64,000 nucleotides of DNA from Neoechinorhynchus agilis (GCA_051530055.1 CM121342.1:15887480-15951479); one strand, 5' to 3'; numbered from the stretch's first letter, positions 1,530-61,685 are shown. Numbers and translations are program-made. The notes: generated from the letters alone by a model not told the origin.

Positions 1530-2280
1530 GGTTAGTCAAAGTATAATTGTGGTGAAAATACTCCGGGTAATAGCAAATTTGATTTATTTGAGATATTTCG
1601 CGAGGTGACCTCGCCCCGTCAGTCATCTTAAAATATGTTTTACCCATATAGGTTTTAAGCTCGAGTGCGCGGGATCGCCAAACCCGAAGTTCGGGGTCAA
1701 TTATCCGTCCATGATTTTAGTATTGATTTTTAACACGTCGCTGGCTGGGAGTTTCAAGCTAAAATTAGCTTTATTTCCTTCCATTGTGTTGAACACAGCG
1801 ATGTGTAAGGCCTCCAAAACAAGACGTCCTTTTAAGTTTTGCTCTATTTCTATAAAGTTGGTGCCACCAAAATCCGCTCGATGCTTACATGTCTCTTGAT
1901 GATTTGAGATTGCCGACGAATGCTCAAATCGACTGCAGGCTTGCTTATGTTTGTTTGTCCGTGCATTCTATATATCCCATGAGTCGGCTCAGTTTTGCCC
2001 TTCTTATTGAATGTGCTTCTGAGAGCGATTCCTTTTGTGTTGTATAGACAAATTCCAGTCTTACTCATAATAGAGTAAATCATTTGATTCGTGTCATCTT
2101 CAATGAAGTGCACTATTTCGAATCATACATGCTCTGCAGAAGATTTGTTGTTGTTATACGGATGTTAGTTACTGCCTCTGGCTCCCCGGTCTATAATCCA
2201 TTCGGGATATCCCCTCATTTTTCAGCTCCTGTACTATCCTCTCCCTTATGCTGTTCCATGCAAAACGAGTAGATGAGATA
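1530..2280 (-). mobile_element. Penelope-like element 3' remnant (GYP motif, GIY-YIG C-terminus, pseudo-LTR with hammerhead)
   Basis: Minus frames give RGYPEWII (about 2190-2215), THGIYRM and DFGGTNFIEIEQNLKGRLVLEALHIAVFNTMEGNKANFSLKL (stop 1701-1703). The last aligns with the GIY-YIG ORF at 20625-20975. A hammerhead motif follows about 75 nt downstream. Confidence 0.7.
1589..1625 (-). ncRNA. Minimal hammerhead ribozyme motif (A9>G, probably impaired)
   Basis: Minus strand reads TGA CTGACGG G GCGAGG-TCA-CCTCGC GAAA TAT C TCA, then AATAAAT. Confidence 0.65.
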
Positions 2281-2489
2281 AAAGAAGCTCTTCAGAAGTA
2301 ATAAGTGACAGCCGAGATTTTATGCTTCATCGGTTCCGCATGTAAATATTCGCCAATATTCTCAGTAGGTCTAAATTAAATTACTTTGCTAAAACCGAAC
2401 ATTTCAGCAACAAAAATATAACATGAAATGCAGCTTCTTAATAGAGTTTAAACGCTATCTAGAAATAGGTTGTTAATTGGCTAGCATAT

Positions 2490-2702
2490 TTAACCAGTCC
2501 TTATTAATTCCTCAATGAGAACTGAAACGTAGAACATTTTGTGTACCGTTGGTATAAATAACGAAGGGAGCTCATCGCAATATTTTTTGGTTGATAAATA
2601 CCATGAATCACATTCATCAATGGCATTCATGTTTGAGAAGTCAAGTACCAGAACAACGATACTGAATTTTCTATCGTTGTATTCAATCAAATCACTTGCC
2701 AT
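2490..2702 (-). CDS. Possible small-GTPase-like fragment
   Basis: SIVVLVLDFSNMNAIDECDSWYLSTKKYCDELP resembles the post-switch-II strand/helix of Ras-family folds. No P-loop or NKxD motif was seen. Confidence 0.2.
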   Translation of the reverse strand: MASDLIEYNDRKFSIVVLVLDFSNMNAIDECDSWYLSTKKYCDELPSLFIPTVHKMFYVSVLIEELIRTG

Positions 2703-2829
2703 GCTTTATTTCTTTTTTCTCTGGTTTTCCGTTTGCCGAAATAGAGAACTCACTGCTCGCGTACAGAAACCTAAACGTTAATTCTGAAAAGTAATATTAT
2801 GGTCACAATAATCCACCTTAAAAAGGGAA

Positions 2830-3090
2830 AAGAATAACCATGGAGATTTATCGGAAGCTTGCAACGGGGAAATTCTGGGGAGTTATTGCGATGGGCCCTA
2901 TAAGCTTGCTTTTGAAGAAGTTTCAAGATGGGGGTTATCCATGGTGTTTCGTGGTTGGAGATACTAATGAATTTCTGGGGAATTGTAGAATTTAAGGAAT
3001 TTTTATGGCTGAGGTTAGGGAGGACATGGCCACGTGAGGGTATTTTGTGTTGCCAGATTGGAATATGCGAATATCAGAATTGAGCAAATC
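2830..3090 (-). mobile_element. LINE ORF2 fragment (pre-RT region)
   Basis: Minus translation SNHETPWITPILKLLQKQAYRAHRNNS contains the PWIT motif found upstream of the RT in CR1/L2-type elements. Its purine-rich plus-strand composition matches 1-890. Confidence 0.5.
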
Positions 3091-3164
3091 CATGGGTATT
3101 AAATGCTTCTATCGAGATTTTGTGAGAATGACACAAATCAGAGTTATTTTTTGCTGGGTTTTAA

Positions 3165-3430
3165 ATGGACAAGGATTACAAGATAGCGCTTGTTGCTAAG
3201 GATCATAACTTCACAACCCCTGAATCAATAGTCCTTGAATGCGCTCGTGCTGCCATCCAATGTCTTACTGAGACACAGAAAACGAAATCCTGAACTTTTT
3301 TCAAAATACGTATCTAGAGGTCAAAATCGAAGTATCGTTCTTAGATGTTCAAATGAAGGGAGGCAGGCAGATCTGTTCAATAAAGCAGTCAATGAAGAAA
3401 TGGCGGACCGGGCATATTAAACGTTTGTAA
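3165..3430 (+). pseudogene. PTH2-like pseudogene (second copy)
   Basis: ATG at 3165 gives MDKDYKIALVAKDHNFTTPESIVLECARAAIQCLTETQ. A +1 frameshift then gives an early TGA, and about 90 nt corresponding to roughly 1250-1343 of copy 1 are deleted. Confidence 0.85.
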
Positions 3431-3589
3431 AGTGTCCTTTTTGTTACAAATTTTTCTGCTTGCGTGCTCATGGGATCGAATTAAAATTCAACTCCTAAAG
3501 ATAATATCACCTTCCATTTTGAGAGGTTAAAGAACATCTTTTTCCACTAAATTTAGCTGTTGATACTGTGATTGAAATGTTCCTCATCG

Positions 3590-3790
3590 AAACCGTTAAT
3601 GTATATTCGACGGGATGCCCTTGATCCCAGTTAAGGGTCAACTGGTTCGAATCCGTTACCGCCAATGACGCACAACCAAAGGTTACGAAATACCACTGAA
3701 GGGAGGAACTCACTGATGAGTCCCGCCTACTGGAGGTATCTGAGAATCCGGAGGAATGTACAAACTCATACCGGATGGTCCAGTGTATTG
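3590..3790 (+). mobile_element. Possible PLE 3' end with a decayed hammerhead (3709-3744)
   Basis: MYIRRDALDPS*GSTGSNPLPP resembles the PLE C-terminal EAxYIRxxxPxLNxxxGxxxLP pattern. It is followed by CTCA CTGATGA GTCC-CGCCTACT-GGAG G TAT C TGAG (helix I intact, GAAA lost). Confidence 0.45.
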
Positions 3791-5476
3791 AGTGATTTAA
3801 TTACTTCTCCGAACCAGATCGGTGGCCTGTGTGCTCGAAAAATTATCAGTCGTGATAAAAGGCCACACATTGATACTTAATTATTTAAATTATTCGTGAT
3901 TTTTTTAAGTCTGGCTAGCCGGTTACGTATATTCTGTGTTGAAGTAAGGCCTTTTCCACGACTGATAATTTTGTAACCCGCCATTTAATGTCAATGGCGT
4001 TCTAGTTCTTTGCATTTTATAAAACCCTATTTTAGTCGATTGATTCGCGTTGCCTAAACAAACGAAATGATTTGAACACCGGGAATTTAGTAGGGCGATG
4101 GTTGTTTTGAGCGTTGTCAGTGTTTTTTCACTATTTGAAAAACCTAAAACATTGTGCAAAAATGTTGGAATGGTATTGGAAGCGAGAAGAGTAAAATCAT
4201 TAATGTTGCAGTACGAATTGCCCGTTATCCATTGAAGTTGTAAATTAAAGTATTCGCAAATTAATGTTTCGAATATTATTCTGAATAAAATATCAAAAGC
4301 TTTTATGAAAACACTTGGGACTAATAAGGTGTTTAAAGCAAAGTAGTTTGGGCCGATTAAAAGTTCTAAAAACGACGCACGACTGAACACATTTTAGTTC
4401 CCTTAAGCAACAAATTGTCATCAAAAAGCTTTAGTCGAGATCGAATATTGTTTGAACCGCACCACAAGAGTATTTTAGCGGGCTCAAAGTGCCCGGTGGT
4501 CATGTTTTCAAAATTTTGAGGGGAAAATTTAGTTTAAGATACGAGTTTCACATATGCAAGATAAGCGAAGTTCGAATCAATGATCCGGATTAGAAGGACG
4601 TGTTTGTTTACGACTGCGTATGAAGCATTGGCAGGGAAATTCGAGATTAAAAAGAAGATTCGTCATACTACAGTTATGGTAAGTAAATATCCAATGTCCC
4701 CGTTACCATCTGAAAGGGTTCAAATGTCACATTGATTTTTTATGACATGACACAACGGGTTTTTTCTTTAGCCAGCAAAGATTCTGTCCATCTTTCGCCA
4801 CATAATTAATCTTAGGGAAAGCTGCAGAAGGAATTCATCTTGTGTAACACCAGGAAGGGCCTAAGAAGTACGGATAGACACTGCATGGAAGAAGACTTTT
4901 TCTGCAAAACTAAACACCGTTTGTGCGACCAACCGAAGGATGGACTTTTGCATGCAGACATAAACGAACGGCAGAGCACGTGGCAGATCAGCAGAGAATA
5001 AGAATCCACGGGTATGCGAAGGAAAAGAAACCGTACACACGCCAAATCTTTGTGTATCAGCCACAAGCTCCCACCGGTAGGTATTCCTGCTTTATTATTA
5101 GACTCGGATGAATCCCAAAGAAGCTGCGAAAACATCTCCCCGTTTGCCTAATCGAAATATCAGTAGATTCCTTCTCCTCATGAAGCGGTGATAAACTGGT
5201 TCTTGGGCATCGGGTCTATGGATCGTAATCTTGACACTTTCCTAAAGACGGCCTTTTGTCCCATTGATCAAGTCTGCGTTTTTTGTCTGTCTATCCACCA
5301 TCAGAACTCCTAGTGGGAAGCTCTATTATTGTGTGTTCGTGAAGGAGTGTGCGAATGTACAAAAAGTCTAGAAAGAAAAAGATAGTCGCCGATAAGGTTG
5401 ATGAAAGTAATACAGGAGCCTCATTTGAAGCGTATCGCGCCGTCGTTGCTCTTATATTAACCCGTTTCTAGCACAA

Positions 5477-20314: not shown

Positions 20315-21075
20315 AGCTCGAACTTGAATTGCCTCAATAACGAACTCGATAGATTATGGAATATCTTTAAAAGTGGTGGCTATCCGAAGAAATTAATGTT
20401 AAGAACATTGAAAGATACTCAACAAATGATCGGAAGGGAACCTATAAAAAATCGGGATATCGGATCTTCAACGAATGCAGACACGATATATAGAAATTCC
20501 TTACATAAATGATAGGTGGAATTCCAATATAGAAACATTGATCAAGCAACTCGATATGAAGAAGGAATGTATTATGTATTCCAAAAGGGGACAAACACTA
20601 TATAATTTGTTATAACCTAAAAGAGTGGACAATATAAACGAGTGCGTCTATAGGATCCCCTGCATGGACTGTGATCAATCGTATGTAGGACAAACGAACA
20701 ATATAAAGAGACGGCTCAACGAACATCGCAGAACTGTGTCCAGAAAAATGGATACAAGCTTTGCGATTGTACACCGCGTGATTGAAAATGATCATCAGAT
20801 CAATTTTGGTGCCACTGAGATTCTAGCAAAATGTAACAACCGTAGAGACAGAACAACGATGGAGGCCATTTTAATACAAACAACGCGTACATTTACGCAC
20901 AATAAGGCGGATTACAAACTCCACCTGCGCCTTCCACCTGATATACGTCCTAAAGGACAAATGTTTGTAAAATGACGTGTTTTAGATATCTGAACAAGGC
21001 CCACGCTCAGGCCGAAAATTAATTAAATTAATCTTTAATTCATTAATTGCGCAATATTTTTTAGTTTTAAACAAA
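20315..21075 (+). mobile_element. Penelope-like element, 5'-truncated (RT thumb end, GIY-YIG endonuclease, pseudo-LTR)
   Basis: NELDRLWNIFKSGGYPKKLM, then CVYRIPCMDCDQSYVGQTNNIKRRLNEHRR (GIY-YIG with CxxC) and EAILIQ, stop at 20975, with a hammerhead-like motif about 13 nt later. Confidence 0.85.
20988..21023 (+). ncRNA. Minimal hammerhead motif, G8>C (probably inactive)
   Basis: AT CTGAACA A GGCC-CACGCTCA-GGCC GAAA ATT A AT, directly after the PLE ORF. Confidence 0.55.
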
Positions 21076-23132: not shown

Positions 23133-24264
23133 TTCGATCTGTAAAAAGTAGTTAAATCTTTTTTAAATAACAGAGAGCAAATCGCTGATTAAGTATAAAA
23201 TAAGGATAAAGAATTTGTTTTGAACATTTCGACAAACTCCCTAATTTCGTCACTAGAGCATGCATGTACTCTAGAAATAAGAAATGCACTTGTAATATGA
23301 AACTTCGTGAGAGCGTCAAACATTTGTACGCTGAAACGTCCTTCAATTTTTTTCGAAGATGCGATAAGAACAAGGATATAAAAAAGCGTTTTTTGAAAAC
23401 ATAAAAATCTAGGTTAACTCGCACTCTTAAACGCACTTCCAGCTTATCGAAATATATACGGTCAGAATCAAAGAATGAAGCTAATAAGTAATGGTAAAAT
23501 AAAAGTAGTGCAACAAATTCGTCATGTGAACGAACAATTCCATAGGCATAACACGTGGAGATGGTAACGTGATCGGGAAGCAACTGATCGCAAATTTAAT
23601 GCCTTCCATTTATGCGTTAAACAGAGTCGCGTCCAGTACAAGGCAACTGCATAAACTTTGCGCGTACGTCGCCGCGTTAGGACACGCGCAAGAGCTTCCA
23701 GGGAAACACGGAAAGGGAACCAATTAAGGTCTAGCGAATCCACCACTTTCTGATACATGCTGCCGGGTAGCACTGACGAAATTTATGAGGTAATTTGCGG
23801 CGCTGTATGACGGAAAGACGTGACGTCTTCGCTAATTCGCACAAATCTTTGATCGAAAAAAATATAGTCACATTGAAGAAACTTAAGCAAGAAATGTTTT
23901 CAACGTTCAATTATCAAATTATAGTCATTAGGTATTTGTCAGAATCGATTGTAATTTAAAAAAGCGATTTTTGTAACTTTACTCCGTATGCCGATAAAAT
24001 CTCGGTTTTTCAATCGAATTAAAGAAAGTCAATGTATTTCAGTCCATCAAAAGTTAGTCTGTAACGGCAATAATAAAGAAGTCCGATTACAAAAATCTTT
24101 AAACTATGCTTACGTTCACTTACCTAAGTATCGCGAATTATAGTTGTGATAATTGATCGTAGTTTAACTAAGCGTTTTTGTTACATTATTTCTGATGCAG
24201 ATCAAATCACGTTCTTGAATATAATTAAAGACAAATCAATACATTGTCATTAAATAAACCATTT

Positions 24265-24523
24265 ATACTTTCTTTTGGAAGTTTTTCCACCAAAATTTAC
24301 TTCCGATATTTCGTCGGATAATACCGACATTATCAAGGTGCTCAAGTTTGTACGCGCAATAATGAAGAAATCTGATTACGAAAACCTTTAAACTCAACTC
24401 ACATTCCATTACTGAAGTATCGCGCATTGTAGTAATGAGAATCGCTCGTATCATTTTTTGAATAGAATTAATTACAAGGCAATGAATAGATAAAAAAATC
24501 TCTAAAAGATCCATGGTCAACCG
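24265..24523 (-). mobile_element. PLE-like 3' end / pseudo-LTR abutting the satellite
   Basis: Contains an intact-looking hammerhead with the same helix I and tail start (GGAA) as the 61.6-kb motifs, and DLLEIFL resembling the PLE C-terminal LExxEI. It is cut off where the satellite begins. Confidence 0.45.
24303..24338 (-). ncRNA. Minimal hammerhead ribozyme, U3-A8 variant
   Basis: CC TTGATAA T GTCGG-TATTAT-CCGAC GAAA TAT C GG; all helices pair. Confidence 0.8.
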
Positions 24524-39500: not shown

Positions 39501-40643
39501 TGTACCAATGAACGTGCACATTTCTCGTTCTCAGAAAGGAACTCGGAATTCGAGATAAGAACACGCGCACTTGTCTTTGTACTCATTTTGTGTTCTCTTT
39601 AATTCACTAAATCGTGTAGCAATGAACGTGCACATTTCTCGTTCTCAGAAAGGAACTCGGAATTCTAGATAAGAACACGTGCACTTGTCTTTGTACTCAT
39701 TTTGTGTTCTCTTTAATTCACTAAATCGAGTACCAATGAACGTTCACATTTCTCGTCCTCAGGAAGGAAATCGGAATTGAAATAAGAACACGCTTGTCTT
39801 GTACTCATTTTGTATTCCCTTTAATTCACTGAATCGAGTACCAATGAACGTGCACATTTCTCGTCCTCAGGAAGGAAATCGAATTTGAAATAAGAACACG
39901 CGCACTTGTCTTTGTACTCATTTTGTGTTCTCTTTAATTCACTGAATCGAGTATTAATGAACGTGCATTTCTCGTTCTAAGAAGGAAATTGGAATTCGAG
40001 ATAAGAACACGCTTTTGCGTGCTTTTTATTAATTTTGTCTTCTCTTCTATTCACTAAATCGTGTGCAATGAACGTGCACATTTCTCGTTCTCAGAAAGGA
40101 AATCGGAATTCGACATAGGAACACGCGCACTTGTCTTTGTACTCATTTTGTGTTCTCTTTAATTCACTGAATCGAGTACCAATGAACGTGCACATTTCTC
40201 GTCCTCAGGAAGGAAATCGGAATTCGAAATAAGAACACGCGCACTTGTCTTTGTACTCATTTTGTGTTCCCTTTAATTCACTGAATCGAGTACCAATGAA
40301 CGTGCACATTTCTCGTCCTCAGGAAGGAAATCGGAATTCGAAATAAGAACACGCGCACTTGTCTTTGTACTCATTTTGTGTTCTCTTTAATTCACTGAAT
40401 CGAGTATTAATGAACGTGCACATTTCTCGTTCTAAGAAAGGAAATTGGAATTCGAGATAAGAACACGCGCGCGTGCTTTTTATTAATTTTGTCTTCTCTT
40501 TAATTCACTAAATCGTGTACCAATGAACGTGCACATTTCTCGTTCTCAGAAAGGAAATCGGAATTCGACATAGGAACACGCGCACTTGTCTTTGTACTCA
40601 TTTTGTGTTCTCTTTAATTCACTGAATCGAGTACCAATGAACG
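24524..40643. repeat. Tandem satellite DNA, 114-bp monomer, about 141 copies
   Basis: Consensus gaacgtgcacatttctcgttctcagaaaggaaatcggaattcgacataagaacacgcgcacttgtctttgtactcattttgtgttctctttaattcactaaatcgagtaccaat. The period was checked (24750 to 24864). Confidence 0.98.
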
Positions 40644-41159
40644 GACCATCAGTCTAGTAAAATTGTCGATTCGTAAAGTTATGGAACGTTCCCAATTTTT
40701 CAGTTTAAAACTGTCGACGCTGTTGGAAGTAAATCGGAAAATTCACCATTGCTAAACCTTGACCCTTCATTTTCCCGTCGGATTTAGCCACCGTAGCTTA
40801 GTTAACGCCGTCTTGGAACCACCGATGAAAAAAGTGATCTTTACGTGCAGGTCGCTCCTGGTAGTGAAAATAATGCCGGACAAATGCGCCGAAAAACTGC
40901 TTCTGATTCGCACATTTTATCTGGAAGAATACTTACAAGAAGCAAACTTTAATATTAAGAGATGACTGTTGCGATTGATCGTTATTCGACTGAAAAGCAT
41001 TAGGGGAAATTATTTTCATTGCATGCGTGCTATAAAGTGAACAATTTTGAGAGCGCTTTGTAGGATTTCTCTCGTGTATTTTTCGCTTGCTCAATAAAGT
41101 ATTTGCATTTATATGTATTAAGTGCCAGGAAATAAATTCTGGCACCTTATTTAGGCGAA

Positions 41160-42320
41160 ATGAAGGCTGACATGAATGACATTTTACGAATAGGACGCCC
41201 AAAAATGACTTTAAAAAAATCATCTTCAAAGCACAAGAAGAAGCCTTCTAATCTATCGAGAGAAGCATGGTCTTTGGTGCAGGATTCGAGACAGGAAACG
41301 ATCGACAATCTTGTGAAGGCGACCCAGAAACCGAGAAACAAGGTCAATCGGAGTAAATCATCGAGGATACGATCATGGATCCACCGTACAAATGGCGTGT
41401 TTGGGAAACGATGGAGACGTGAGGACGATAAACGACCAAGTGAATCTTCAAAGACGTCTTTAGCAGTTCATGAATTCACGAGCCAAGAATATTGGAAGAA
41501 GATTGGAGACGACGAATTCTGGTCGTTGGGAAGAACAAGGTATTTGTTTGATTTGTTAAAACGATGCAACTATAGGTTTGTGATCGCTTATGGTGCCTGG
41601 GACGAGGAGGGGCATGGTAAAATCGACGTTGAAGGAATCAAAGAACGATTTTACTATGTTCTGGGGCGATTGAACAAAACCAAACGTAACGAAGGGTTTA
41701 AATACAGCGCAGACGATGAAAGGAAACGAAGAGCCATATCTGAGCTTAAAATGGATCGAAATGAAGACGAAGAAAAGGAAGCAGAAGTCGTACATGAATG
41801 GCATAAGCAATATGTCGACGAACATAAGATCTGTGTACAGAAAAGTGAGGAAATCACCTACCATTTAAAAGTAGTTGAAGAACGAATGAAAGAAATGAGG
41901 GAGAAAAAAACCGAAAGCGTAGTTGAGAAAGTGATTGACAAATATCCTGCTAACGTATGAGTGGATCTAGTACCCAACCCGGAAGGATTTGTAGTTTTGG
42001 GTTATTATGATGAAGTCATTAACAAAATATTTGTGGTGGGTTCGAGAGTCACTCATTTAATGAGTCGGATAATGATTGATTTGGTGAAACTGAACACAAA
42101 AAGACCGAATTCCATCGATCCATTCTTGCAAAAGATTGGATTAAGGCCTCTGGTAATGCAAACCGATTTCAATCTGAAAAAATTAGAAGCATTCGTTCAG
42201 ATGTGGGATGCATATAATGGTTTAACCGAACGAACGGCCCTTGCGTATCATCTCGACGATTTACTGATGTCTTTGCTGAGGTCGATTTATAATTTAGGCC
42301 AAGGAAAGTGTAACATTTGA
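41160..42320 (+). CDS. DMAP1: DMAP1/Swc4 (NuA4/SWR1 subunit) with SANT domain
   Basis: ADMNDIL, SNLSREAWSL, FTSQEY..., FWSLGRTRYLFDLLKRCNYRFVI...GIKERFY and DDERKRR. The in-frame downstream ORF LQKIGLRPLVMQT matches the Swc4/DMAP1 C-terminal domain. A TGA at 41958-41960 probably lies inside an intron (41845-41970). Confidence 0.88.
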
Positions 42321-42569
42321 TGAATAGATCTCTTCAAACGATACCTTTCCTTCAATAAATCCTCAATCATTGAAGAAAATCGATTTTTCCATTATGCCTT
42401 CTTGGGACTCTTTAGTTTCCACTAAGACGACTCCAGAAAAAAAGGAGGAAGACGGTTGTAGAGATCAATAAATACCACGATTGGGAATGTCGATGATATG
42501 TGAAATACCGGGGAACGATATTGGAATTATTGTTCAGAAGTCTTCACCCACGGTAAATAATTATTTATT

Positions 42570-42607
42570 AAAGACGTTTCGAACCTCGTCGGGTTCATCA
42601 TCAGTTT
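42570..42607 (-). ncRNA. Minimal hammerhead ribozyme, canonical core, GUC site
   Basis: AAA CTGATGA T GAACC-CGACGA-GGTTC GAAA CGT C TTT, then AATAAATAA. Confidence 0.85.
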
Positions 42608-42669
42608 GTTGGTTAGTAATAGACGCAATTTTAATTTAATTTGACATATACGACCTAGAGTTTATTTAT

Positions 42670-42708
42670 TTGCCTAGCTTTCGCCGTATTACGGCTTCAT
42701 CTGGGCAA
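42670..42708 (-). ncRNA. Minimal hammerhead motif, U4>A
   Basis: TTGCC CAGATGA A GCCG-TAATA-CGGC GAAA GCT A GGCAA, then ATAAATAAA. Confidence 0.7.
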
Positions 42709-43248
42709 TTGCTTATATTTTTTTAGATATAGGTCGTATAAGTCAAATTAAATTAAAATTAAGACACACACCTGGAAAATCAAGCAGCGATTCACGTTAT
42801 TAGTAATAGACGTTACGACGGGTTCGAAGCGTCTTTAATGAATAATCATTTATCGGGTATATACCTAAACAATAACTCTAACCACTAATGGGGAGATGTA
42901 GAGACTGGAAGTTTTGGAGTTGGGACGAAACTAAATGCTAACGCTTTGAGAACCCGAGATTTAAAAAGCCGCAGAAGATTTCAAATATTCCATTTAACAT
43001 TCTTTCGTGGCTATAAACGCTAAAAATGAAGTGCTGTGATGAATGTGTAGCCAACACTATAATTTAATCCCACATTTAGACATAACACTTTAATTTGTAC
43101 CACTTTATCGGCATTGTAAAGAAGTTGATCGTTTATGTATGTGTTCTTTGGTTATTATAGAAATAGAGACTTTTTATTCGATTTTCGCTAACGAACTCTC
43201 ATGCGAGAAACGTCCTTTTAACTTTTTTTCTATATCCAAACGATTTAC

Positions 43249-43286
43249 AATCTGAAGAAGTCCGACGAGATGGACGAAATATTGAG
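43249..43286 (+). ncRNA. Decayed minimal hammerhead motif
   Basis: CTGAAGA A GTCC-GACGAGAT-GGAC GAAA TATTGAG AATAAATAAAT. Core and helix II are intact; the helix I/III register is broken. Confidence 0.55.
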
Positions 43287-43473
43287 AATAAATAAATCAG
43301 TCTCTATTTTTGTAATCACTAAAGAACACATTTATGAGCGTTCGATTATGTTTGGATTGTCATCGTTGTCTTGCGCCTTGCACATTGTGGAGATTCTTTA
43401 AATTGGAATTAGTTGGCACTGGTGAACAATTTAATGTTATGGGCGACGAAAATTTAGAATTTTGTTTTTAGAT

Positions 43474-44811: not shown

Positions 44812-45559
44812 TAGGATTGCGATCTCGCTCTACCCCTCATCTACAGTGATACGCGATTTTTGTTGTTCCCGATAAAAACTACGCATATTCCGACATTTCA
44901 CTTGAAAATATCTGATCAACGCACAATTTTATAGGTCTATTGATATGCTCGTTAAAACCCTCTCTCATTCTGTCAATATTTAGCATCTTTCATAGCTACA
45001 TTAATCGAGCAAATCTCGCCTACTTGTGTTTACAAACCGTTTTAAACACAACTATCTCGATATGACCATCTATCCTTAGCAAAATCTATCTCTGGCATAG
45101 AATGTGATGGTCACGGTTTCCTTTATTCTTCAAGAATTCTCGAATATTTGTACTCTGTTTTGCCTCGATACAAGAAAAGCCATGGTGTGAAAATACTGAA
45201 ACTAATTTTATGCTTTAAAATGTTCTTAAGTATCAACGGATGAAACGGGTGTTCGTTCATGACTGATTTTCATATTTAAATGTCAAACTTTTCCATTATT
45301 TATAGTGCCTTTACGGATGACTTGCTAAAATTTCAACATTTATCCGAAATTTATTAGTTTCCAATACTTTAGATATCCACAAAATGCTTCGAATTGGGTC
45401 GTAGAATGAGGGAAACGACCGACGACAACAGGAGTGAGGTAGCGCCAGCAGAATTATGGACACGATCTCAACAAGTGGCGAGATTGCATGTAATTTTCAA
45501 TATTAAATAACTGAAATTATATAATAAATTATCTACAATCATTTAATGTTGTGTAAACT

Positions 45560-45810
45560 AAATTATCGAATTATCGCGAATTTTCGTTGTGAGAATCAAT
45601 CGCAGCTTAGAAGTCGCCTATAGACGGTAAGTTCGTTTATCGAAGTACCGCGAATTTCCGTTGTGAGAATCTATCGTAGTTTAACAAAGGGTTCGGAGCT
45701 TTTAACAAAGTTGAAAACAAGTCAATGTATTAGCCTTCAAAAATTTATTTTTAATCGACGGCAATTCGCGAATTATCGTTCTAAGAATCGATCGTAGTTA
45801 AGGAAGGCTC
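45560..45810. repeat. Degenerate repeat of about 50 bp, three copies here plus copies near 24125 and 46200
   Basis: Shared core aagtatcgcgaatt(w)tcgttgtgagaatc(d)atcgtagtttaac. Confidence 0.6.
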
Positions 45811-46284
45811 TTTGTGTCACTTTATTTCTACTGCAAATCAAATCGAGTTTTTGAAATTTTTTAAGAAAAACTGTTTTTGAAGTTTGGCCATCCGGTAACT
45901 TTTCAGTATCCTTGTGTGACCTCGTGGTAGATAATTTTTCTTAGTACACAGCCCACTGATCTGGTTCAGGGACGCGCATAAAATCACACTTAATATCCTG
46001 AACCAAACGCGGTTATTAGTTTGTACATCGTGAGCTGCCCAAGGAAAATTATCAGCCGTGAGGCCATTAAGGATACTGAAAAACTGTTTATTAACTTTCA
46101 AAAATTTATTTTTAATCGACACCTAATGAAATTTGTACCGGCAGAAATAAAATAAATATGATTTTGAAAATCTTTCAATTTTGTGCAAATTCCTTTATCG
46201 AAGTATCGCGATTTTTTGTTGTGAAAATATGTTTTAGTTAAAAAACCTTTTTTACTTTATTTCAAATGCTGACCAAATCTGTTT

Positions 46285-46790
46285 TATTAAGTGCCAGGAA
46301 ATAAATTCTGGCACCTTATTTAGGCGAAATGAAGGCTGACATGAATGACATTTTACGAATAGGACGCCCAAAAATGACTTTAAAAAAATCATCTTCAAAG
46401 CACAAGAAGAAGCCTTCTAATCTATCGAGAGAAGCATGGTCTTTGGTGCAGGATTCGAGACAGGAAACGATCGACAATCTTGTGAAGGCGACCCAGAAAC
46501 CGAGAAACAAGGTCAATCGGAGTAAATCATCGAGGATACGATCATGGATCCACCGTACAAATGGCGTGTTTGGGAAACGATGGAGACGTGAGGACGATAA
46601 ACGAGCAAGTGAATCTTCAAAGACGTCTTTAGCAGTTCATGAATTCACGAGCCAAGAATATTGGAAGAAGATTGGAGACGACGAATTCTGGTCGTTGGGA
46701 AGAACAAGGTATTTGTTTGATTTGTTAAAACGATGCAACTATAGGTTTGTGATCGCTTATGGTGCCTGGGACGAGGAGGGGCATTCCTGA
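46285..46790 (+). pseudogene. Truncated, near-identical duplicate of the DMAP1 5' region
   Basis: 46285-46784 matches 41116-41615 (500 bp) with one visible substitution (P>A). The frame ends EEGHS* inside the SANT domain. Confidence 0.9.
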
Positions 46791-47651: not shown

Positions 47652-47725
47652 TTATATATTTCGCGAGGAAACCTCGCCTTATCAATCATTATTTGCAAGT
47701 GTAAAGCGAGGTTTCCTCTTTCGAA
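47652..47725 (-). ncRNA. Hammerhead motif (47652-47688, U3-A8) in a 70-bp direct repeat of 48035-48104
   Basis: TGA TTGATAA G GCGAGG-TTT-CCTCGC GAAA TAT A TAA (one helix I mismatch). Confidence 0.65.
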
Positions 47726-47989
47726 TCCGGAAAATGTTTACTCACAAAAGCGCTAACTCCTTTATTCTCGTTCATTTTTTCCATCATGTACTCGAAGAAA
47801 TATTCGAACGTTTTACAGTCATCGCCTTTCAGTTCGGGTTTTGGTCTATACGAGATACCAAAGCTATTTTTCGCGGTCTATTAGGAGGATTCGAAAATAT
47901 AGGAATTGGATTTTTGACTATTATTTAACGAAAATAACAGAATTGTTTATTTAACAAGCCGTTTTGAGACCATAAAAGAAGTCTTTACT

Positions 47990-48153
47990 TGTGGTAAAGA
48001 TAATCCCGGCGTAAAATCATTTTATTGTACTGAAATATTTCGCGAGGAAACCTCGCCTTATCAATCATTATTTGCAAGTGTAAGGCGAGGTTTCCTCTTT
48101 CGAAATATTTCAGTATAATAAAATAATTTTTAACCGGGATTGTCTTCACCACA
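47990..48153. mobile_element. Palindromic solo pseudo-LTR related to the PLE at 1530-2280
   Basis: Inverted arms of about 70 bp (47990-48060/48081-48153). The tail ttaaccgggattgtcttcaccaca is homologous to ttacccggagtattttcaccaca after the 1589-1625 motif. Confidence 0.75.
48031..48067 (-). ncRNA. Minimal hammerhead ribozyme, U3-A8 variant
   Basis: TGA TTGATAA G GCGAGG-TTT-CCTCGC GAAA TAT T TCA; all helices pair. Confidence 0.75.
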
Positions 48154-48301
48154 TGTCAAAATTTACCATCCCGTGAACTTTCTCGATATGATAAATGAAA
48201 TCAGTTTTGAATTTCACAGACTATAGCTGCAGTGTATAACTGGGAGCCTTCCATTCTCTCCCGTTTTTCGAACCTATACCATAGATCTTCCTTCGTTGTA
48301 A

Positions 48302-49543: not shown

Positions 49544-51745
49544 TCACATAGACCACAACCTGAGTATTTCCTTCCGTTTTTCGTCTGAGATATTGAGAGG
49601 CATTTTTCTAAGTCGCTGGAATAAAAGTCGTTTAGTGGGCGATGCGTGTTCCTCGTGTCTCGTCTTCTTTTCAAAGCAAACACTAGTCTCCTGCTTCCTC
49701 AAAGGAACTAATGGTTCGTCTCTGGACTGGAAGCAATTCCAGAATTTGAGACGCTGGTCGCCACCGACAGTCGCCACGGACTGTCTGTCTGGTGAAATTG
49801 CCATTGTCAGAATCCGACCCATGTGACCTTCCAAAGTTGCGACCTTCCTAAGGCGACTTTCGTCTGGACCTTTACGTTCATACCGCCAGACGTACATGTC
49901 ATTGCTCGAAAATCCATGCGAAGTGATTAATTCCATGTAATGATAAGAAAACTCAATTCCACTAATCTGACTTCGAGTGTTCACCTGAAACACTTGACGC
50001 TCCGAACTCACGTTCGTCAGCACTAATCTTTTGTCAGCGCTACCACCACCAGTCATCAGATAATTGTATCGCCATGGGCACCAGGAAATAGCTTTTACGG
50101 CTGCTCTATGCGCTCTTATGGTCAAAAGTGCTCTTGGCCGAACTTGATTAAAATTAGAGGAAGCCGAAGTCAAATCCTTGCAAAGATATCGTACATCCCA
50201 AACACGAACGATGTTTTCGTTACCTCCTGAAGCCAAAAATCGATTGCAGTGAGACCACCGAGCGTTACAAATGATCTGAGAGTGAGCGTTTGGAATCTGA
50301 CCAAAGCAGTGATTCGACAATCGTACGTCATGGAACTGGATGCAACCATTCGAATTTCCAGTCACCAGGACATTCTGGTTCCAATCCAATGCACAAACCT
50401 TATACTCGATGTTCGTGAGAAACGTTCGCAGAAGGGAATAATCACACACGTCGTAGATATGAACGATGCCATTTAACACCGAAACCGCGGATAGATCGCC
50501 ATCACGGTTAAATCGAAACGAAGTAATGGTTGAAAGAGCATCTCTTGATGTGAGTTTATGAACCTCGCCCGATTCCACTTGATATAGAAACACACTTGGA
50601 CCTAGGGCGAGACCTATGTAATTTTTATGAGACCAATCGAGAGCGTTCATGTAAAAGTCTTCTACGATTCCTGGAGCGTCCAGGATTCGACTGGGCAATT
50701 GTGGAACTCTACGGTAGTGTCCGTCCAACATGCTCTGCATGAGATACTCGTCAGGAACCTTGAACGTGTCACACTTTGGTGCATTGGATGTAATCGACTC
50801 TTTAGGAATTCTTCTTTTTGTTAGAACCACGGATATTTATCACCTTAAGCTACCCAAGACAAAAAAAATCACAAGAAATATGATTGCGGTTGGTTTTAAA
50901 GAACTGGACTCCTTAAAATTCAAAGTGATTTAAATAAATACGTCAGCTTCATCGTAGATTTGATGACCATAAGCAATCGAAAAACAAGTTTACGTTTTCA
51001 TTATGAAAGTTTCGCAAGCGATTTATTGTTCATGGCCATCTTAACTTCGATGATGAAGATGTGTTTGTCTTAGTGTGACCTATAATTTAAAAGCATTAAA
51101 AATTTGCCGTAGAAGTCGAAGGCTCATAGAAATTAGATGTAACGAATTCAATAATTTTGCTGAATTAGGCCAGGGTTATATCAAAACTAGGAAAAACATT
51201 CATGTCCTTTCTATCAAGGAACATAATCCGTAATTATTTACTGCGTCATGTTCAAAAATTAGAATGGGTCCTCGTTGTTGAAGCCGTCTTAAATGCCTTT
51301 TTTGTTCATTCCTATGTCGTATTTCGGCAGCTCTTCTTTTGGCTAAAATATATTGCGTATGAAGAATTCCTCCCGGTTCAATGGCAGAAGCCTGTGACAT
51401 TGCATGCAGTGCAACCGATTCATCAATACTTTCCGGTTCAGTGTTGGTGGACAGATCTTGTGCTTGCAGAATCATGTATCCGCGTTCAAAATCCATTTTT
51501 TCTCGATTTGGAATAAATCGATGAGAAATAAAGGAAGCTTGCATTCTGCGATCATTCTTATAGCGATCCAAGTTTACGTGAAGAGGTGCACCGATTTTGT
51601 CCGGAATCTCGTTTATGTTTGGTTGAGATGCTATTAAGCGCGTATTCTCGATTTTATCAATCGCAATTGTTGTCAACGATAAACTGCGATCAGGAATGCT
51701 AATTTCGTTCAACTCTTCAAGCAAAGATTTTGAGTTAAAGCTCAT
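49544..51745 (-). CDS. CDC20: APC/C coactivator Cdc20/fizzy family, multi-exon
   Basis: C-box HRFIPNR in the 51200-51883 ORF, RRVPQLPSRILDAPGIVEDFYMNALDWS, and WD40 repeats (LASGGNEN, HRAAVKAISWCPW, GGGSAD, ELITSHGF, GHMGRIL..SPD). The start codon is uncertain (ATG 51745 or further upstream). Confidence 0.92.
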
Positions 51746-52710: not shown

Positions 52711-52749
52711 TGACTGATGAGGCGAGGTTACCTCCTTCGAAATATCTCA
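52711..52749 (+). ncRNA. Solo minimal hammerhead motif, canonical core
   Basis: TGA CTGATGA G GCGAGG-TTA-CCTCCTTC GAAA TAT C TCA AATAAATCAAA; same family as 1589-1625, helix II bulged. Confidence 0.7.
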
Positions 52750-57194: not shown

Positions 57195-57299
57195 AGCCAA
57201 TTAGATTTCAGGATCAAATTGATTTTTGTACATACGCGCACCAGCCAATAGGATTTTAGATTGAGCCCATATGTTCTTCTAATCGCATTCTTATTGGCT
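57195..57299. promoter_or_regulatory. Three CCAAT (NF-Y-type) boxes at 48-bp spacing
   Basis: AGCCAAT at 57195 and 57243 and reverse ATTGGCT at 57293; CCAAT cores start at 57197, 57245 and 57293. They lie upstream of the zinc-finger gene. Confidence 0.5.
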
Positions 57300-57735: not shown

Positions 57736-59480
57736 ATGTACAACGGCGCTGCTTCTGTCGCTGATAAACTCATGACTGACAGAATCTCCGACAAACTTGA
57801 GTGTACCTGCGGAAAAGTCTTCAATATCACTATCACGGTCTCGGACGGTCATCACCACAACGGCCAACCAGCATCCAACGAAGACAATGTCTATATGAAA
57901 CGAGGACGAAAATCCATCCCGCCAAGAAAACTCGTCCGGTCAAACCATTCACTTGCTATATCTCCGCCTGTGGTGGCTGAATCACCCCCTGCCGCCATTG
58001 TCACCGCTCCAGCACTACCGCACACACCACTGCAACAATCAACTACAACAGCCGCGGGAGCTGCCTGCTTACATCCCCTCAACTTCGCGAGGATCCTCGA
58101 CCCTGTGAGGTATGGAGAATGCTGCCGTACATTGTTTCAAAGTGTTGGCTCCTTTGCTTTTGGAAGTCTCAATGGAGCAGTGCATGGGGTTCACTCAAAT
58201 TCTGACCATGGAAGTCCTTCTCCGAACACTTCCATTCCTGATATCATGGATGCTCCAAGAAGAGAAAACATCAACAATTTATTATTGGCTCTCGGAAGCA
58301 CCGCAACAGACGTAAGAACCAACTTCTTCAATGTACTCGCTGTCAATCCGACACGTAAGTATAATATAACCAAAAAATATCCTCTCACTGTTGTTTAACA
58401 GAGTCGATACAGTGTCCTTCAATCACGACATTGCCACAAACGCAAAATCTGCAACCTCCACCACCACCGCCCCCACCGACTTTTACGCCTCATACAAGTA
58501 CTGGCACCACGCGATCAGTTATCCAGGTTGAAGCAATCGAAAGCCGCGAAAATATCAGCAAAAATAAAAAACTTACAAAATTCGGACTGCTCAAACTGAG
58601 CGAAGGTGAATCAGATAAAAATTGCTCAACATTGACTAATCATTCTCTCAATCAATCACAAATTCCCAATGATTCCGGAAAAAATGGTGAGGTTCAATTA
58701 GGTCGATAACCGATGCCGCTCTATTTTTCGAGCAACAGAAACGAAAATTTCATGATTCCCCTCGTCAGTTCGAATGAAATTATTTTGTATCTTCAGATAA
58801 TTCCTATTGACTAAATTTTTTAGACCAGTATGAAAATTCCCCAGTTAACTTTTGGACGTTTCTTCTCCAATTGCACAACCCATTATTCCGCATTTTCCTT
58901 TTTTAAATTCGTAAAAATTGCCCTTTTAAAAGTTTTCCGCATTTTCGTTATAAATTCGTAAAAAATGCTTTCTTAAAATTTTCCTTCTAATTTAGCTCAC
59001 GTCGAAGAAGTAATTGACGGCAAGAAAAGATTCAAATGTCCATCATGTTCAAATATATATGCAAACCGCAGCGGTCTAAACCGTCACTATGTCACACACA
59101 GCGTGAACGATGAGTGGAAAAGTAAATGTGCCATTTGTGGCAAGAAATATTCAAGGAAAGACAGTCTAAAACATCATATAAAGACTCAGCATCACATGAA
59201 TAATGATGAAGCTGGTCGTGTCATTTCACGGTCAGACAAGAAACTCATTGCAGCAGCGGCTGCAAAGCAAGGCATTTACTACGACACCTCCAGTACCGCT
59301 GCTTCCAGTGCCATTCTATATGACACCGGTGCAGAAAGTCCAAAGCGTAGGAGGTTGGAGTCGTTCTCGGATATAGATATGAACGATCCAATATGTCAAA
59401 CCGTTGTGCAACTCGTTGGTGAAATGGAAGGAGCAATTGTAAAAGCTTTCGGTGATTTCAATACCGATTCGACGCAATGA
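57736..59480 (+). CDS. C2H2 zinc-finger transcription factor, multi-exon
   Basis: Low-complexity N-terminal exons. The last exon encodes FKCPSCSNIYANRSGLNRHYVTH and KCAICGKKYSRKDSLKHHIKTQH. Introns at about 58356-58399 and 58691-58995. Confidence 0.8.
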
Positions 59481-60296
59481 CGAATTAAGGGTGCAGTGTC
59501 GGTTATTGGCCGAAACATACAAAATGTATATTGTTAAAATAAAAATTCTAATAAAACCTCAAAACTTAAAATATTTGAATATACAGATGCATTTGCATGC
59601 ACATGATGAAACTTGATCAGCCAGATCAAGGTCTCCTATTGACCTTATCAAACTGTTTACACCTTCTTCTTTACACACTAGCAAGTACCATATCGGATTC
59701 AAGGTCCCAGCTCGAAGACGTAAAACCATTTTAAATGTTTGTATTAGAAGAATAGAATACCAGCTTACGAGGGAATCGGACGTTTCTCGACGAATATGCT
59801 GTTGTAGTTCGTTGATTGCAAATTGTTGTACCATCTGAGAACAAAATCCTGAACCAGAATAATAAAGCTCACTTAGCGAACTTTGGATTCATTAGAATTT
59901 GCTTTTACCTGAAGCACTAAATGTGGTTATTTGTTTAAATCTAATATAAATGGTACGAAGCAATGCTACCAGCGTGATGGCGACGGTCGAGGAAGGACAA
60001 AAGCTGGAATTTGGCGGGAGATGGTGAGTGTGCTTCAAACAGATTGTTCGAATTGTTAAAAATATAATGTTTAAAAAAATGGTATTCTTAAGTAATTGCT
60101 CATCAATCGTGTAAACTTGAGACGATAAAATGAATGGGACAAATGCTGTCTGCATTAAACCAAAATCCAAAAAATTATCACCTTTTTTTCTATTATCTTG
60201 TTCCTGTTTCTTTTATATGTGTTTCATTATTGACAAACAATAAAACGCGCATGTATTTTACCTTCGATTTTACAAACCCCTCTAATTAGATCCAAT

Positions 60297-60839
60297 TCAT
60301 TGAAATCTGAATCCAGTGGGCACATCTCCTAATTTATTTAATATTTTTGTCGGCGACGATAACTCTTTAGCTGTCTTCGCACTTGTTTTCGCACTTTTTT
60401 CGGTCATGTCTATTTCCTTGATTCTGTGAACGATTTCTCGAACATTTGTCTCGACGACCATTCCACCCGTTATCATCTCCTGAACGATATAGTTGATTTT
60501 GTCGGGATTAAAGATGAGATCAAGCTCACAAACGTTGTGAAAACACAAGTCAAGCACTTCAACAAATGCCTGAATTAGATCGAGAATAGCTAGCTCGTTT
60601 TCGGATTCGTCAATGTGGATACAAATGTATACCGTTGCATAATAGCGGTAAACGAGCTTTGAGGAAGGGCGATCGGGTATCACATGTTCAACGAAACAAC
60701 AAGATTTGTCTGATCGCTTACATATCGCTTGGAACGTTCGGAGAATCACACTTTGTTGCTCCTGTTCTGTTAGAGAAATGTAGAAGCTAGCAAGACGGGG
60801 CTTCCCGGTTTTATTCATTATAAGCAAATACTCGATCAT
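60297..60839 (-). CDS. AP3S1: AP-3 complex subunit sigma
   Basis: GKPRLASFY, KLVYRYYAT, ENELAILDLIQAFVEVLDLCFHNVCELDLIF and EMITGGMVVETN, with the C-terminal extension typical of sigma-3. Confidence 0.95.
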   Translation of the reverse strand: MIEYLLIMNKTGKPRLASFYISLTEQEQQSVILRTFQAICKRSDKSCCFVEHVIPDRPSSKLVYRYYATVYICIHIDESENELAILDLIQAFVEVLDLCFHNVCELDLIFNPDKINYIVQEMITGGMVVETNVREIVHRIKEIDMTEKSAKTSAKTAKELSSPTKILNKLGDVPTGFRFQ

Positions 60840-61567
60840 TGTCTGAAATAATAAATTTGGACAACGTTCAAAATGAAGATAATCGACTTGCGATACGAAA
60901 ACGACGATGATAAAAGTTATATAATTGACATTTTAGCCAGCATAATTTAAATCAGGCTTTAAACAGAACCCCGTGAATAACTGTAACAGACTTCTGAAGA
61001 GATAAATATCTACGCGATGGTGGCTAAGACAATGCTGAATATAACGCGAGGAAGCGACCACAAGATTTATTTTGCTGTCTACACATACTAAACGGATGTG
61101 CCGTTGAGTCATAAAATGTGAAGTTATGTACATAGTCCAGGAAAAGAGCGTCAGAATTTAATTTCGAAGATAAGTAAATCTCAGAATCTTATTGTTTTTA
61201 GAGTTAGGCAGTAAAAACTTAAAGATAATGTGAATATTTGTTTCTCCGAGGCTTAAAAAAGTGAAATGGGCAACGATATTTTTTGGATGTAACACTGACG
61301 AATAGCGTAGCAAAGATAATTTAACGGCGAAATCCCCAGAAAAAAATAATCTCCGTCCTTTCGACCGTTACACCAGGACGGCAGCCGAGTGATGATCTTT
61401 TGGCTTTCAAATAAATAATCTTTAAAAGTTAAAAAATTTAAAAAACGAAATAAAATCTTTTAATTTTTTCGCACCGATATTAAATGCCATCAGATTAGCA
61501 GATGATATTTACATTCGACACCGTTCATGTTTTCTTATGGTGGAAAAATTAAAAGAATTTATGGATT

Positions 61568-61603
61568 CCGATATTTCGGCACAATCTTGTGCCTTCATCA
61601 AGG
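61568..61603 (-). ncRNA. Minimal hammerhead motif (U3.G8)
   Basis: CC TTGATGA A GGCACA-AGAT-TGTGCC GAAA TAT C GG. Confidence 0.7.
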
Positions 61604-61649
61604 TTGTTTAGGTGTATTATTCGCACTTGAATGTCACACACTTAAACGA

Positions 61650-61685
61650 CTTTGATAAAGGCACAAGATTGTGCCGAAATATCGG
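61650..61685 (+). ncRNA. Minimal hammerhead ribozyme (U3-A8)
   Basis: CT TTGATAA A GGCACA-AGAT-TGTGCC GAAA TAT C GG. Confidence 0.75.

Follow-up and report, generated by a model that had tools for sequence, protein, structure and literature searches.

The stretch of DNA analysed here (the window: 64,000 nucleotides of the Neoechinorhynchus agilis genome, GCA_051530055.1 CM121342.1:15887480-15951479) belongs to an acanthocephalan, a thorny-headed parasite of fish. It is nuclear and gene-dense, with long exons. Its long open reading frames (ORFs), considered as possible genes of Penelope-like elements (PLEs), were rejected as such and are those of the host genes CDT1, CDC20, GST, SRP68 and a DMAP1-like SANT gene. 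A 16-kb satellite occupies positions 24524-40643, with 142 copies of a 114-bp unit (90% matches) and higher-order periods of 228 and 342; examined as a possible ribozyme carrier, it contains no descriptor or model match. An initial annotation, made by reading the sequence, had reported twelve minimal hammerhead ribozyme motifs across the window, in at least six families, and had ascribed them to PLEs. Our analyses confirm that the minimal type-I hammerhead layout is real at 11 of these 12 sites (Table 1), which represent seven helix II types and lie far above chance expectation.

The descriptor used for the search demanded two or more base pairs in helix I and the box Y-T-G-A-N-R-A, whose positions 3 and 8 had to be able to pair. 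Next came at most one spacer base, a helix II with a minimum of 4 bp and a loop of 3-10 nt, GAAA, a 4-nt ANNT palindrome and a base other than G at the cleavage site (H17). Five motifs, named hereafter by first coordinate and strand, match it strictly in the window: 24303(-), 42570(-), 48031(-), 61568(-) and 61650(+). The mean over 200 dinucleotide-preserving shuffles of the window is 0.005. Relaxed descriptors gave 7 matches against 0.08 in the shuffles and 8 against 0.34, and none of the 200 shuffles equalled the observed count at any stringency, so that the population passes the comparison with shuffled sequence that the initial annotation had named as its check. Since the strict matches are spread over four helix II families without relation to each other, the excess is not explained by repeat copies. 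Two motifs, 43251(+) and 47654(-), are added once the helix I requirement is dropped, and four more, 1589(-), 20988(+), 42670(-) and 52711(+), when a single deviation in the core, or a single mismatch in helix II, is tolerated.

Reading of all 12 sites shows the full pattern in seven of the 11 accepted motifs: 24303(-), 42570(-), 43251(+), 47654(-), 48031(-), 61568(-) and 61650(+). The other four keep the layout with a single damaging change each, namely A9G in 1589(-), G8C in 20988(+), U4A in 42670(-) and a broken helix II in 52711(+), and therefore do not fit the YTGANRA pattern as it was originally written for all sites. At the twelfth site, 3709(+), CTGATGA and a helix I of 4 bp are present, but the GAAA box and the bulge are missing; the site was dropped, as the covariance model described below scores it at noise level (12.2 bits, E = 3.6). 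The remaining 11 motifs in 47.9 kb of non-satellite DNA correspond to about one per 4.4 kb, close to the one per 4 kb first estimated.

Table 1. Features of the window. For the motifs, the core box, helix II strands, helix III palindrome, cleavage-site base and covariance-model score are listed where available.
Feature	Coordinates	Strand	Details
Family A1 hammerhead	1589..1625	-	CTGACGG (A9G), GCGAGG/CCTCGC, ATAT, H17=C; 38.3 bits
Tail of 1589(-)	to ~1541	-	ends ...CACCACAATTATAC
PLE-type C-terminal GIY-YIG endonuclease remnant, frameshifted	1704..2122	-	stop 78 nt upstream (sense) of 1589(-)
GIY-YIG domain, second divergent PLE copy	20616..20972	+	VYRIPC...YVGQT...EH; coding from ~20450, stop 20973-20975
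Family F hammerhead	20988..21023	+	CTGAACA (G8C), GGCC/GGCC, AATT, H17=A; 32.8 bits
Family E head-to-tail array, unit ~290 nt	23940..24523	-	unit 1 24523-24236, intact motif; unit 2 24260-~23940, decayed
Family E hammerhead, intact	24303..24338	-	TTGATAA (U3-A8), GTCGG/CCGAC, ATAT, H17=C, helix I 2 bp; 41.1 bits
Family B inverted pair	42521..42881	.	left (-) arm 42521-42657, or to 42729 with motif 42670(-); right (+) arm 42730-42881
Family B hammerhead, fully canonical	42570..42607	-	CTGATGA, GAACC/GGTTC, ACGT, H17=C, helix I AAA/TTT; 34.6 bits
Family B2 hammerhead-like motif	42670..42708	-	CAGATGA (U4A), GCCGT/ACGGC, AGCT, H17=A, helix I TTGCC/GGCAA
Family C inverted pair	43050..43417	.	right (+) arm, hammerhead and tail; left (-) arm, tail and ribozyme relic 43166-43188
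Family C hammerhead	43251..43284	+	CTGAAGA intact, GTCCG/TGGAC, ATAT, H17=T, helix I one wobble pair; 35.3 bits
Family A2 hammerhead	47654..47686	-	TTGATAA; no tail, helix I 1 bp; 39.7 bits
Family A2 inverted pair	47979..48164	.	right (+) arm starts within the ribozyme, 48081-48114, no core box 1
Family A2 hammerhead, intact	48031..48067	-	TTGATAA (U3-A8), GCGAGG/CCTCGC, ATAT, H17=T, helix I TGA/TCA; 42.6 bits
CDC20	49544-50830	-	encoded protein
Family A1 hammerhead, solo stub	52711..52749	+	CTGATGA intact; helix II 3' strand disrupted (CCTCCTTC); tail ~16 nt; 26.1 bits
GST, intronless	53238-53915		gene product
Family D inverted pair	61513..61737	.	arms ~110 nt each, both with ribozyme; 85% over 200 nt
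Family D hammerhead	61568..61603	-	TTGATGA (U3-G8 wobble), GGCACA/TGTGCC, ATAT, H17=C; 44.2 bits
Family D hammerhead	61650..61685	+	TTGATAA (U3-A8), GGCACA/TGTGCC, ATAT, H17=C; 43.6 bits

Ten copies of equal geometry could be aligned in register (inclusion of 52711(+) and 42670(-) makes MAFFT split helix II). Counting helix I, C3-G8, five helix II pairs and the helix III palindrome, standard pairs fill 90.9% of the cells, against 59.5% in column shuffles (0 of 500 as high) and 30-48% with slid partners. Helix II is paired in 98% of cases among these copies, with compensatory two-sided changes in four of its five pairs; its pairing is part of the search pattern, and significance rests on the shuffle counts and not on this percentage. 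Several features that the descriptor did not demand are nevertheless constant, including the G10.1-C11.1 closing pair, invariant in all ten aligned copies, the fifth and sixth helix II pairs, and a single bulge after A9. All descriptor matches with an intact helix II take this one-base spacer although its absence was permitted, copies from two other chromosomal loci (L003 and L004, see below) do likewise, and 52711(+) is compatible with it if homology guides the reading of its damaged helix II. Four copies have a U-A pair at 3-8, three have C-G and one has U-G, and helix III is a 4-nt palindrome (ATAT, ACGT, AGCT or AATT) in all 11 window copies. The helix II pairs, palindromes and extra base after A9 quoted in the initial annotation were thus all read correctly. 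A covariance model trained on nine window copies and one L003 copy recovers the two motifs left out, 52711(+) with 26.1 bits (E = 7e-4) and 42670(-) as a match at 42672 with 18.7 bits (E = 0.06); the next match reaches 13.9 bits. Hammerheads with a true helix III hairpin do not exceed chance in the window (1 match against 0.9 expected).

Fortuitous matches of a permissive pattern in AT-rich sequence might be suspected from the failure of Rfam to report a hammerhead, from the minimal helix I and from the noise-level score of 3709(+). We give this explanation practically no credence. It is already refuted by the shuffle test, with 5 strict matches against 0.005 expected and 0 of 200 shuffles reaching that number, and it does not account for the conservation of features that were not required, such as the bulge, G10.1-C11.1, the extra helix II pairs and an AATAAA-like box past the cleavage site (P about 7e-8), nor for the presence of motifs beside independently found GIY-YIG remnants.

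Two of the 11 motifs sit where PLE ribozymes belong, directly past a C-terminal endonuclease, the distance from endonuclease stop to motif being 12 nt for 20988(+) and 78 nt for 1589(-). For the remnant next to 1589(-), Pfam gave no family on the decayed ORFs 1704-1967 and 1853-2122, and a word-indexed protein search with a frame-merged 141-aa query gave no match; exhaustive phmmer then found nine relatives of 1704-1967(-), with E = 2.8e-18 to 3e-10, and tblastn showed 57% identity. These relatives, three of which are annotated N. agilis proteins, read GIYKIPC...YIGQT...SAISNHQ...EAIHI, which we take to be the GIY-YIG signature of PLE type. Pfam places GIY-YIG across the aligned stretch in two of the nine, and one of these two (P0062) begins with the reverse transcriptase (RT) motif ...LFYADD...; relatives of the endonuclease remnant proteins carry RVT_1 together with GIY-YIG. 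A tblastn search with the relatives revealed the second remnant of the window, at about 20478-20954(+), with the translation VYRIPCMDCDQSYVGQT...NEH..., and Pfam recognises PF01541 GIY-YIG at 20616-20972(+) (E = 1.5e-8, 35.3 bits, cut-off 22.6). The assignment of the motifs to the minimal hammerheads of PLEs made in the initial annotation is therefore borne out by the GIY-YIG remnants beside 20988(+) and 1589(-). Its remark that most copies lack an adjoining ORF holds for the nine window copies beside which we find no coding remnant, but not for these two.

The same association exists elsewhere in the genome. Three loci around the three N. agilis proteins (L002, L003 and L004) cover 66 kb on three chromosomes, and the endonuclease remnants of L003 and L004 were picked by protein homology alone. 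Three of these are followed, within about 40-60 nt, by the same ribozyme with a homologous tail. The plus-strand copy of L003 reads CTGAAAA-G-GCAAGG-AAAA-CCTTGC-GAAATAT-T, and the copies on the minus strand of L003 and the plus strand of L004 are decayed; in L002, the tail downstream of the endonuclease remnant is kept and the ribozyme deleted. The tails of these loci, AAATAAAT...ACCGGGGA...ATTCGCCAACG.ACAAT, are homologous to those of window family A (1589, 48031, 48081), and helix II differs from that of family A by one compensated change from G-C to A-U. In L002-L004, the model additionally detects copies related to families C, D and F of the window. With families A, C, D and F recurring on other chromosomes, the families are dispersed genome repeats. 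The family A stubs at 48031, 48081 and 52711 share ribozyme and tail with the endonuclease-linked 1589(-) and with the copies on other chromosomes, so that, on the basis of this homology, family A stubs are heavily 5'-truncated ends of autonomous-type PLEs.

Two published N. agilis gene models, at L004 10001-12623 (P0060) and L002 10001-12921 (P0062), appear to have PLE remnants spliced into genes. The first combines part of PTH2 (peptidyl-tRNA hydrolase) with a GIY-YIG part, and the second an RT fragment with a GIY-YIG part across a 2-kb "intron"; both are probably annotation chimeras.

The window copies measure about 75-680 nt. Their 5' ends vary inside one family: in family A, they lie within the ribozyme (48081), at least 20 nt upstream of it (48031) or hundreds of nt upstream (1589), which is the pattern of truncation and not that of a fixed unit. 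Four loci are head-to-head inverted pairs, with the tails outward and the ribozyme-proximal ends central, forming palindromes of 190-390 nt. Each arm of the family D pair consists of about 25 nt of upstream sequence, the 36-nt ribozyme and a tail of about 52 nt. The right arm of the family B pair carries a decayed hammerhead (42810-42836), and 42670(-), with its helix I of 5 bp, is placed between both family B arms. Inverted partners of 1589, 20988, 24303 and 52711 were not detected above shuffled controls. Four palindromic loci of this size, with weak Rfam scores as plant-type microRNA hairpins, could also suggest miniature DNA transposons or foldback elements whose terminal inverted repeats resemble hammerheads by accident. 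We consider this very improbable: we found neither target-site duplications nor a conserved terminal motif, the arms are asymmetric, the same ribozyme-plus-tail modules occur solo and beside GIY-YIG ORFs, and a DNA transposon end would have no reason to keep catalytic boxes across unrelated helix II families.

One motif departs from these forms. A 70-nt hairpin is present twice, 379 nt apart (47656-47725 and 48035-48104, 98.6% identity), and 47654(-) lies inside the first copy, which corresponds to the centre of the 48071 palindrome. In the hairpin, part of an antisense ribozyme is followed by 20 nt and by a sense ribozyme up to GAAATAT; the two hairpin copies resemble each other far more than do the arms of the 48071 palindrome. 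As the hairpin copy has neither tail, it is unlike a normal PLE insertion.

Past the cleavage site, an AATAAA or AGTAAA box begins 3-7 nt after H17 in seven of the 11 copies (1589, 24303, 42570, 42670, 43251, 48031 and 52711), against a 4% background (P about 7e-8), and is also found in the L003 and L004 copies. Both family D copies have CATAAA at this position. The box is conserved across families with unrelated helix II; no mention of an AAUAAA-like box after the cleavage site was found in the PLE and hammerhead literature compared here. A role as a poly(A) signal, as a stem-I/loop-1 contact or as an RT-recognition element not yet described is conceivable. Similarity within families stops about 55-65 nt past H17 in A/C-rich sequence (ACCACAAGT, AACAATAA, AACACAT, CCATAA); both tails of the 47979-48164 pair, for instance, end in ...ACCACA(A/T)GT. 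The tail of 52711(+) ends about 16 nt past H17, some 35 nt earlier than in its relatives, where the end lies about 50 nt past H17; this fits the optional tail known from PLEs.

The box also invites the idea that the host has domesticated these ribozymes to process or terminate the transcripts of neighbouring genes in a compact genome. All copies are intergenic, several lie 100-700 nt from gene ends, and most have the poly(A)-signal-like sequence past the cleavage site. Such a role seems highly unlikely to us, given that four of the 11 copies are core-inactivated and the partner arms decayed, that the motifs occur on either strand relative to the neighbouring genes, and that the same modules are dispersed on other chromosomes.

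Taken together, these observations lead us to interpret the motifs, with a probability of about 0.8, as minimal type-I hammerheads of PLEs that lie in 3'-terminal stubs left by dead PLE insertions of N. agilis, truncated at their 5' ends. An intact element, coding for an RT with a C-terminal GIY-YIG endonuclease, would carry the ribozyme 12 to about 80 nt past the ORF stop, followed, as in the layout observed here, by the AAUAAA-like box and by a tail of about 55-65 nt with an A/C-rich end. By analogy with published PLE ribozymes, the active fold would involve two copies, either tandem on one transcript or on two RNAs, paired through A15.1-N-N-U16.1, and would cleave after H17. Reverse transcription would begin, as proposed from an Anolis PLE, inside the RNA and a few tens of nt 3' of the ribozyme, yielding a fixed insertion end; every insertion would then end at a fixed distance past the motif, with which the tail ends shared within families agree. 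Where cDNA synthesis aborted early, a solo stub of about 75-680 nt would remain. If both cut DNA strands served as primers, the result would be the head-to-head inverted stubs with outward 3' ends that we observe, and stubs would subsequently decay neutrally.

Most copies in the window are read here as relics and not as working ribozymes. Hammerhead catalysis needs U4, G8, A9 and helix II, and changes expected to abolish activity affect four of the 11 motifs as well as three partner arms: 1589(-) (A9 to G), 20988(+) (G8 to C) and 42670(-) (U4 to A) are each probably inactive. Moreover, a 4-nt helix III is unable to close on itself, so that a single copy cannot form an active hammerhead and two are needed; since the ribozymes of an inverted pair are on opposite strands, one transcript carries only one of them. 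Copies 42570(-), 48031(-), 24303(-) and 61650(+) would be the best candidates for cleavage. The statement in the initial annotation that such hammerheads cleave efficiently as dimers was too strong, published in vitro activity being low even for dimers (PMC4209133; PMC6765202).

Several observations weigh against a PLE origin of these stubs or against their nature as ribozymes. Concerning the origin, all stubs are very short and dedicated short elements would also fit; target-site duplications were not found around the four inverted units, where the longest common words have 5-6 nt; and tblastn with RT-bearing relatives detected endonuclease remnants in the window but no PLE-type RT remnant. 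In roughly 130 kb examined, there is no ORF-linked copy of families B, C, D or E, for which the PLE origin therefore rests on shared architecture. Concerning the ribozyme, helix I, mostly of 2-3 bp and ranging from 1 to 5, is very short, an AUAU helix III would be weak even within a dimer, and minimum free energy (MFE) and cofold predictions for monomers and homodimers yield alternative hairpins, which in the MFE folds of the families with U3-A8 sequester the core, the hammerhead core being something that MFE and cofold calculations do not model. Finally, the Rfam hammerhead models (Hammerhead_1 RF00163, Hammerhead_3, HH9, HH10 and Hammerhead_II) gave no match at the gathering score in the 64 kb, at E <= 10 in the 64 kb or at E <= 10 in 901 nt with three of the motifs. 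The Rfam families have in common with the window motifs CUGANGA and GAAA as core boxes and H17 as cleavage site, but their models are built for longer helices and for a hairpin at helix III. We attribute this silence to a limit of the curated models and do not count it against the motif; judging from our searches, Rfam 15 has no representation of the minimal PLE variant. Together with the lack of a helix III hairpin class above chance, it indicates that the motif is specifically the minimal variant.

Tandem arrays bear on how autonomous these families are. Family E forms an array of two to three units of about 290 nt, one with an intact ribozyme, which is broken off at 24524 by the 114-bp satellite and whose unit has decayed relatives at 45500-46285. 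At 8821-9868 in L002, a 161-nt unit is repeated in tandem 6.5 times (89% matches). Each copy contains a family D-like motif (17-18 bits) with a GGTACC palindrome in its helix II region, which is poorly paired. This second array lies directly upstream of the RT fragment (YADD) of the P0062 gene model. Such a layout recalls retrozymes and is shared by none of the other nine window motifs; from it, families D and E may include non-autonomous tandem elements, retrozyme-like passengers of the PLE machinery.

Metazoan non-LTR retrozymes (LTR, long terminal repeat) are tandem repeats of 150-450 bp with type-I hammerheads (Cervera & de la Peña 2020, PMC7229834), and a recent preprint derives animal retrozymes from PLE pseudo-LTRs (Li, Clavereau & Pollet 2026, 10.64898/2026.07.22.740005). 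The 161-nt and ~290-nt arrays resemble them in their ORF-less head-to-tail repeats, low GC content and coexistence with autonomous PLEs. By contrast, the hammerheads of invertebrate retrozymes are usually canonical, with loop-loop contacts and efficient cleavage as monomers, whereas the window motifs are of the minimal PLE type, mostly solo or inverted, and the L002 units have a poorly paired helix II.

The initial annotation had gone further, proposing that the copies could be several families of non-autonomous ribozyme-bearing mini-retroelements. In its general form, most copies would be independent elements, retrozyme-like or SINE-like, with units of 100-300 nt that comprise a ribozyme and its tail and are mobilised in trans by PLE enzymes, possibly via small circular RNAs. 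We judge this unlikely, even if part of it agrees with the D and E arrays. In its favour, a coding remnant is missing beside nine of the 11 motifs, every stub is shorter than 700 nt, the family E array with its ~290-nt head-to-tail units and the L002 array with its 6.5 copies of 161 nt match non-LTR retrozymes in size and tandem layout (150-450 bp repeats, with rotifers among the hosts; PMC7229834), and the 2026 preprint would provide their derivation. However, members of families A and F stand in physical continuity with endonuclease remnants, which makes a non-autonomous explanation unneeded for them, and the A stubs without an ORF show homology to the 3' ends so linked. In addition, the 5' ends are unequal within one family, most window copies are solo or in inverted pairs (a known PLE form) and not tandem, helix II is badly paired in the L002 array, and the window array keeps one intact ribozyme among its two to three units. 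As an extension of the truncated-PLE interpretation, we entertain only tentatively, as possible but not probable, that one set of ribozyme-plus-tail modules serves two kinds of elements, autonomous PLEs and the ORF-less arrays of 161 and ~290 nt, the AATAAA-like box perhaps being a functional part of the module.

Most of the architecture found in N. agilis is known from other PLEs. Minimal hammerhead ribozymes were defined in PLE pseudo-LTRs by Cervera & de la Peña 2014 (PMC4209133), with an unpaired base between positions 9 and 10.1, a G10.1-C11.1 pair, palindromic positions 15.2-16.2 and a covariant core with U3-A8. Their families are extremely heterogeneous within a genome, the copies number thousands, occur mostly solo and are "probably related to truncated PLEs", pairs of motifs lie on opposite strands 100-700 bp apart, and in vitro cleavage is low even for dimers. 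All the features listed in the initial annotation had thus already been described for PLE hammerheads (PMC4209133). The window motifs share with these ribozymes (PMC4209133; PMC6765202, citing Lünse, Weinberg & Breaker 2017) the type-I topology without a helix III hairpin, the palindrome implying a dimer, the base after A9, G10.1-C11.1, the covariation between C3-G8 and U3-A8, heterogeneous families, mostly solo copies, opposite-strand pairs and a place next to an RT/GIY-YIG ORF. They differ in their helices: helix I, at the lower limit of the known lengths, has mostly 2-3 bp, against 4-5 bp in Schistosoma, and helix II 4-6 bp, against 7-8 in published PLE hammerheads.

The form of the insertions is equally familiar. 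PLE insertions are heavily 5'-truncated, often adjoin an inverted 5'-truncated copy and have an optional tail of 30-40 bp, and hammerhead-bearing Neptune and Penelope/Poseidon families occur in another acanthocephalan, Pomphorhynchus laevis (Craig et al. 2021, PMC8557442). The copies in the window agree with canonical PLEs with a C-terminal endonuclease in their 5' truncation, adjoining inverted copy, optional tail and A/C-rich insertion end. They depart from them in that the stubs are extremely short and the window has neither a full-length element nor a PLE-type RT remnant; we found no autonomous PLE there (RT and GIY-YIG ORF, pseudo-LTRs), only truncated relics. The PLE protein of Anolis cleaves and extends both DNA strands in vitro, reverse transcription starts within the RNA shortly 3' of the ribozyme, and ribozyme mutants had no effect on insertion in vitro (Frangieh et al. 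2024, PMC11167929). This internal start downstream of the ribozyme explains the tail. The Anolis ribozyme overlaps the start of the next tandem ORF, whereas that of N. agilis is seen only past the endonuclease stop. The genome paper of N. agilis (PMC12690905) is silent on both PLEs and hammerheads, and the novelty of our finding is the host: a known kind of element in N. agilis, where neither PLEs nor these ribozymes had been reported.

Other features of the window deserve mention. Its sole RT fragment, at 700-921(-) (RVT_1, E = 7e-8; QGAVLSPLLF...YADE), is like those of long interspersed nuclear elements (LINEs) and adjoins no motif. At the right end, 62707-63441(+) contains ORF pieces that resemble, by eye, the C-terminal region of a LINE; Pfam gave no match for them. 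Two duplications involve host genes. One, of 500 bp with 99.8% identity (41116-41615 and 46285-46784), comprises the 5' part of the DMAP1-like SANT gene and points to a very recent segmental duplication; the hammerheads 42570, 42670 and 43251 and decayed family E units lie between its copies. The other (961-1485 and 3109-3543, 86-91% identity) includes most of the PTH2 ORF, and about 55 nt separate the end of its first copy from the 3' end of PLE remnant 1589; a regular PTH2-PLE linkage was checked and found no support. Beside the rejected site 3709(+) are a weak 136-nt palindrome (3839-3972) and a segment (3756-3880) that matches 45902-46028 in inverted orientation with 71% similarity. Finally, GC content peaks at 0.49 between 56000 and 58000, against about 0.38 elsewhere, with low-complexity Pro/Ala-rich ORFs in several frames upstream of a zinc-finger gene.

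These findings leave the known workings of hammerheads and PLEs unchanged. They show that a very short ribozyme called by eye can be right and statistically testable, and they document a high local density of PLE minimal hammerheads, about one per 4-5 kb. For genome annotation, the stubs, inverted pairs and short arrays are to be masked as PLE-derived. In at least one published gene model, of the P0060 type, a PLE remnant seems to have been merged with a host gene. Inverted stubs whose 3' ends point outward represent the genomic outcome predicted by the cutting and extension of both strands in vitro. With stub, ORF-linked and tandem-array forms together, the N. agilis genome becomes a test case for the proposed PLE origin of animal retrozymes. 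If the same modules did serve both autonomous PLEs and ORF-less arrays, they would provide a sequence link, within one genome, for invertebrate retrozymes as derivatives of PLE 3' ends mobilised by PLE enzymes.

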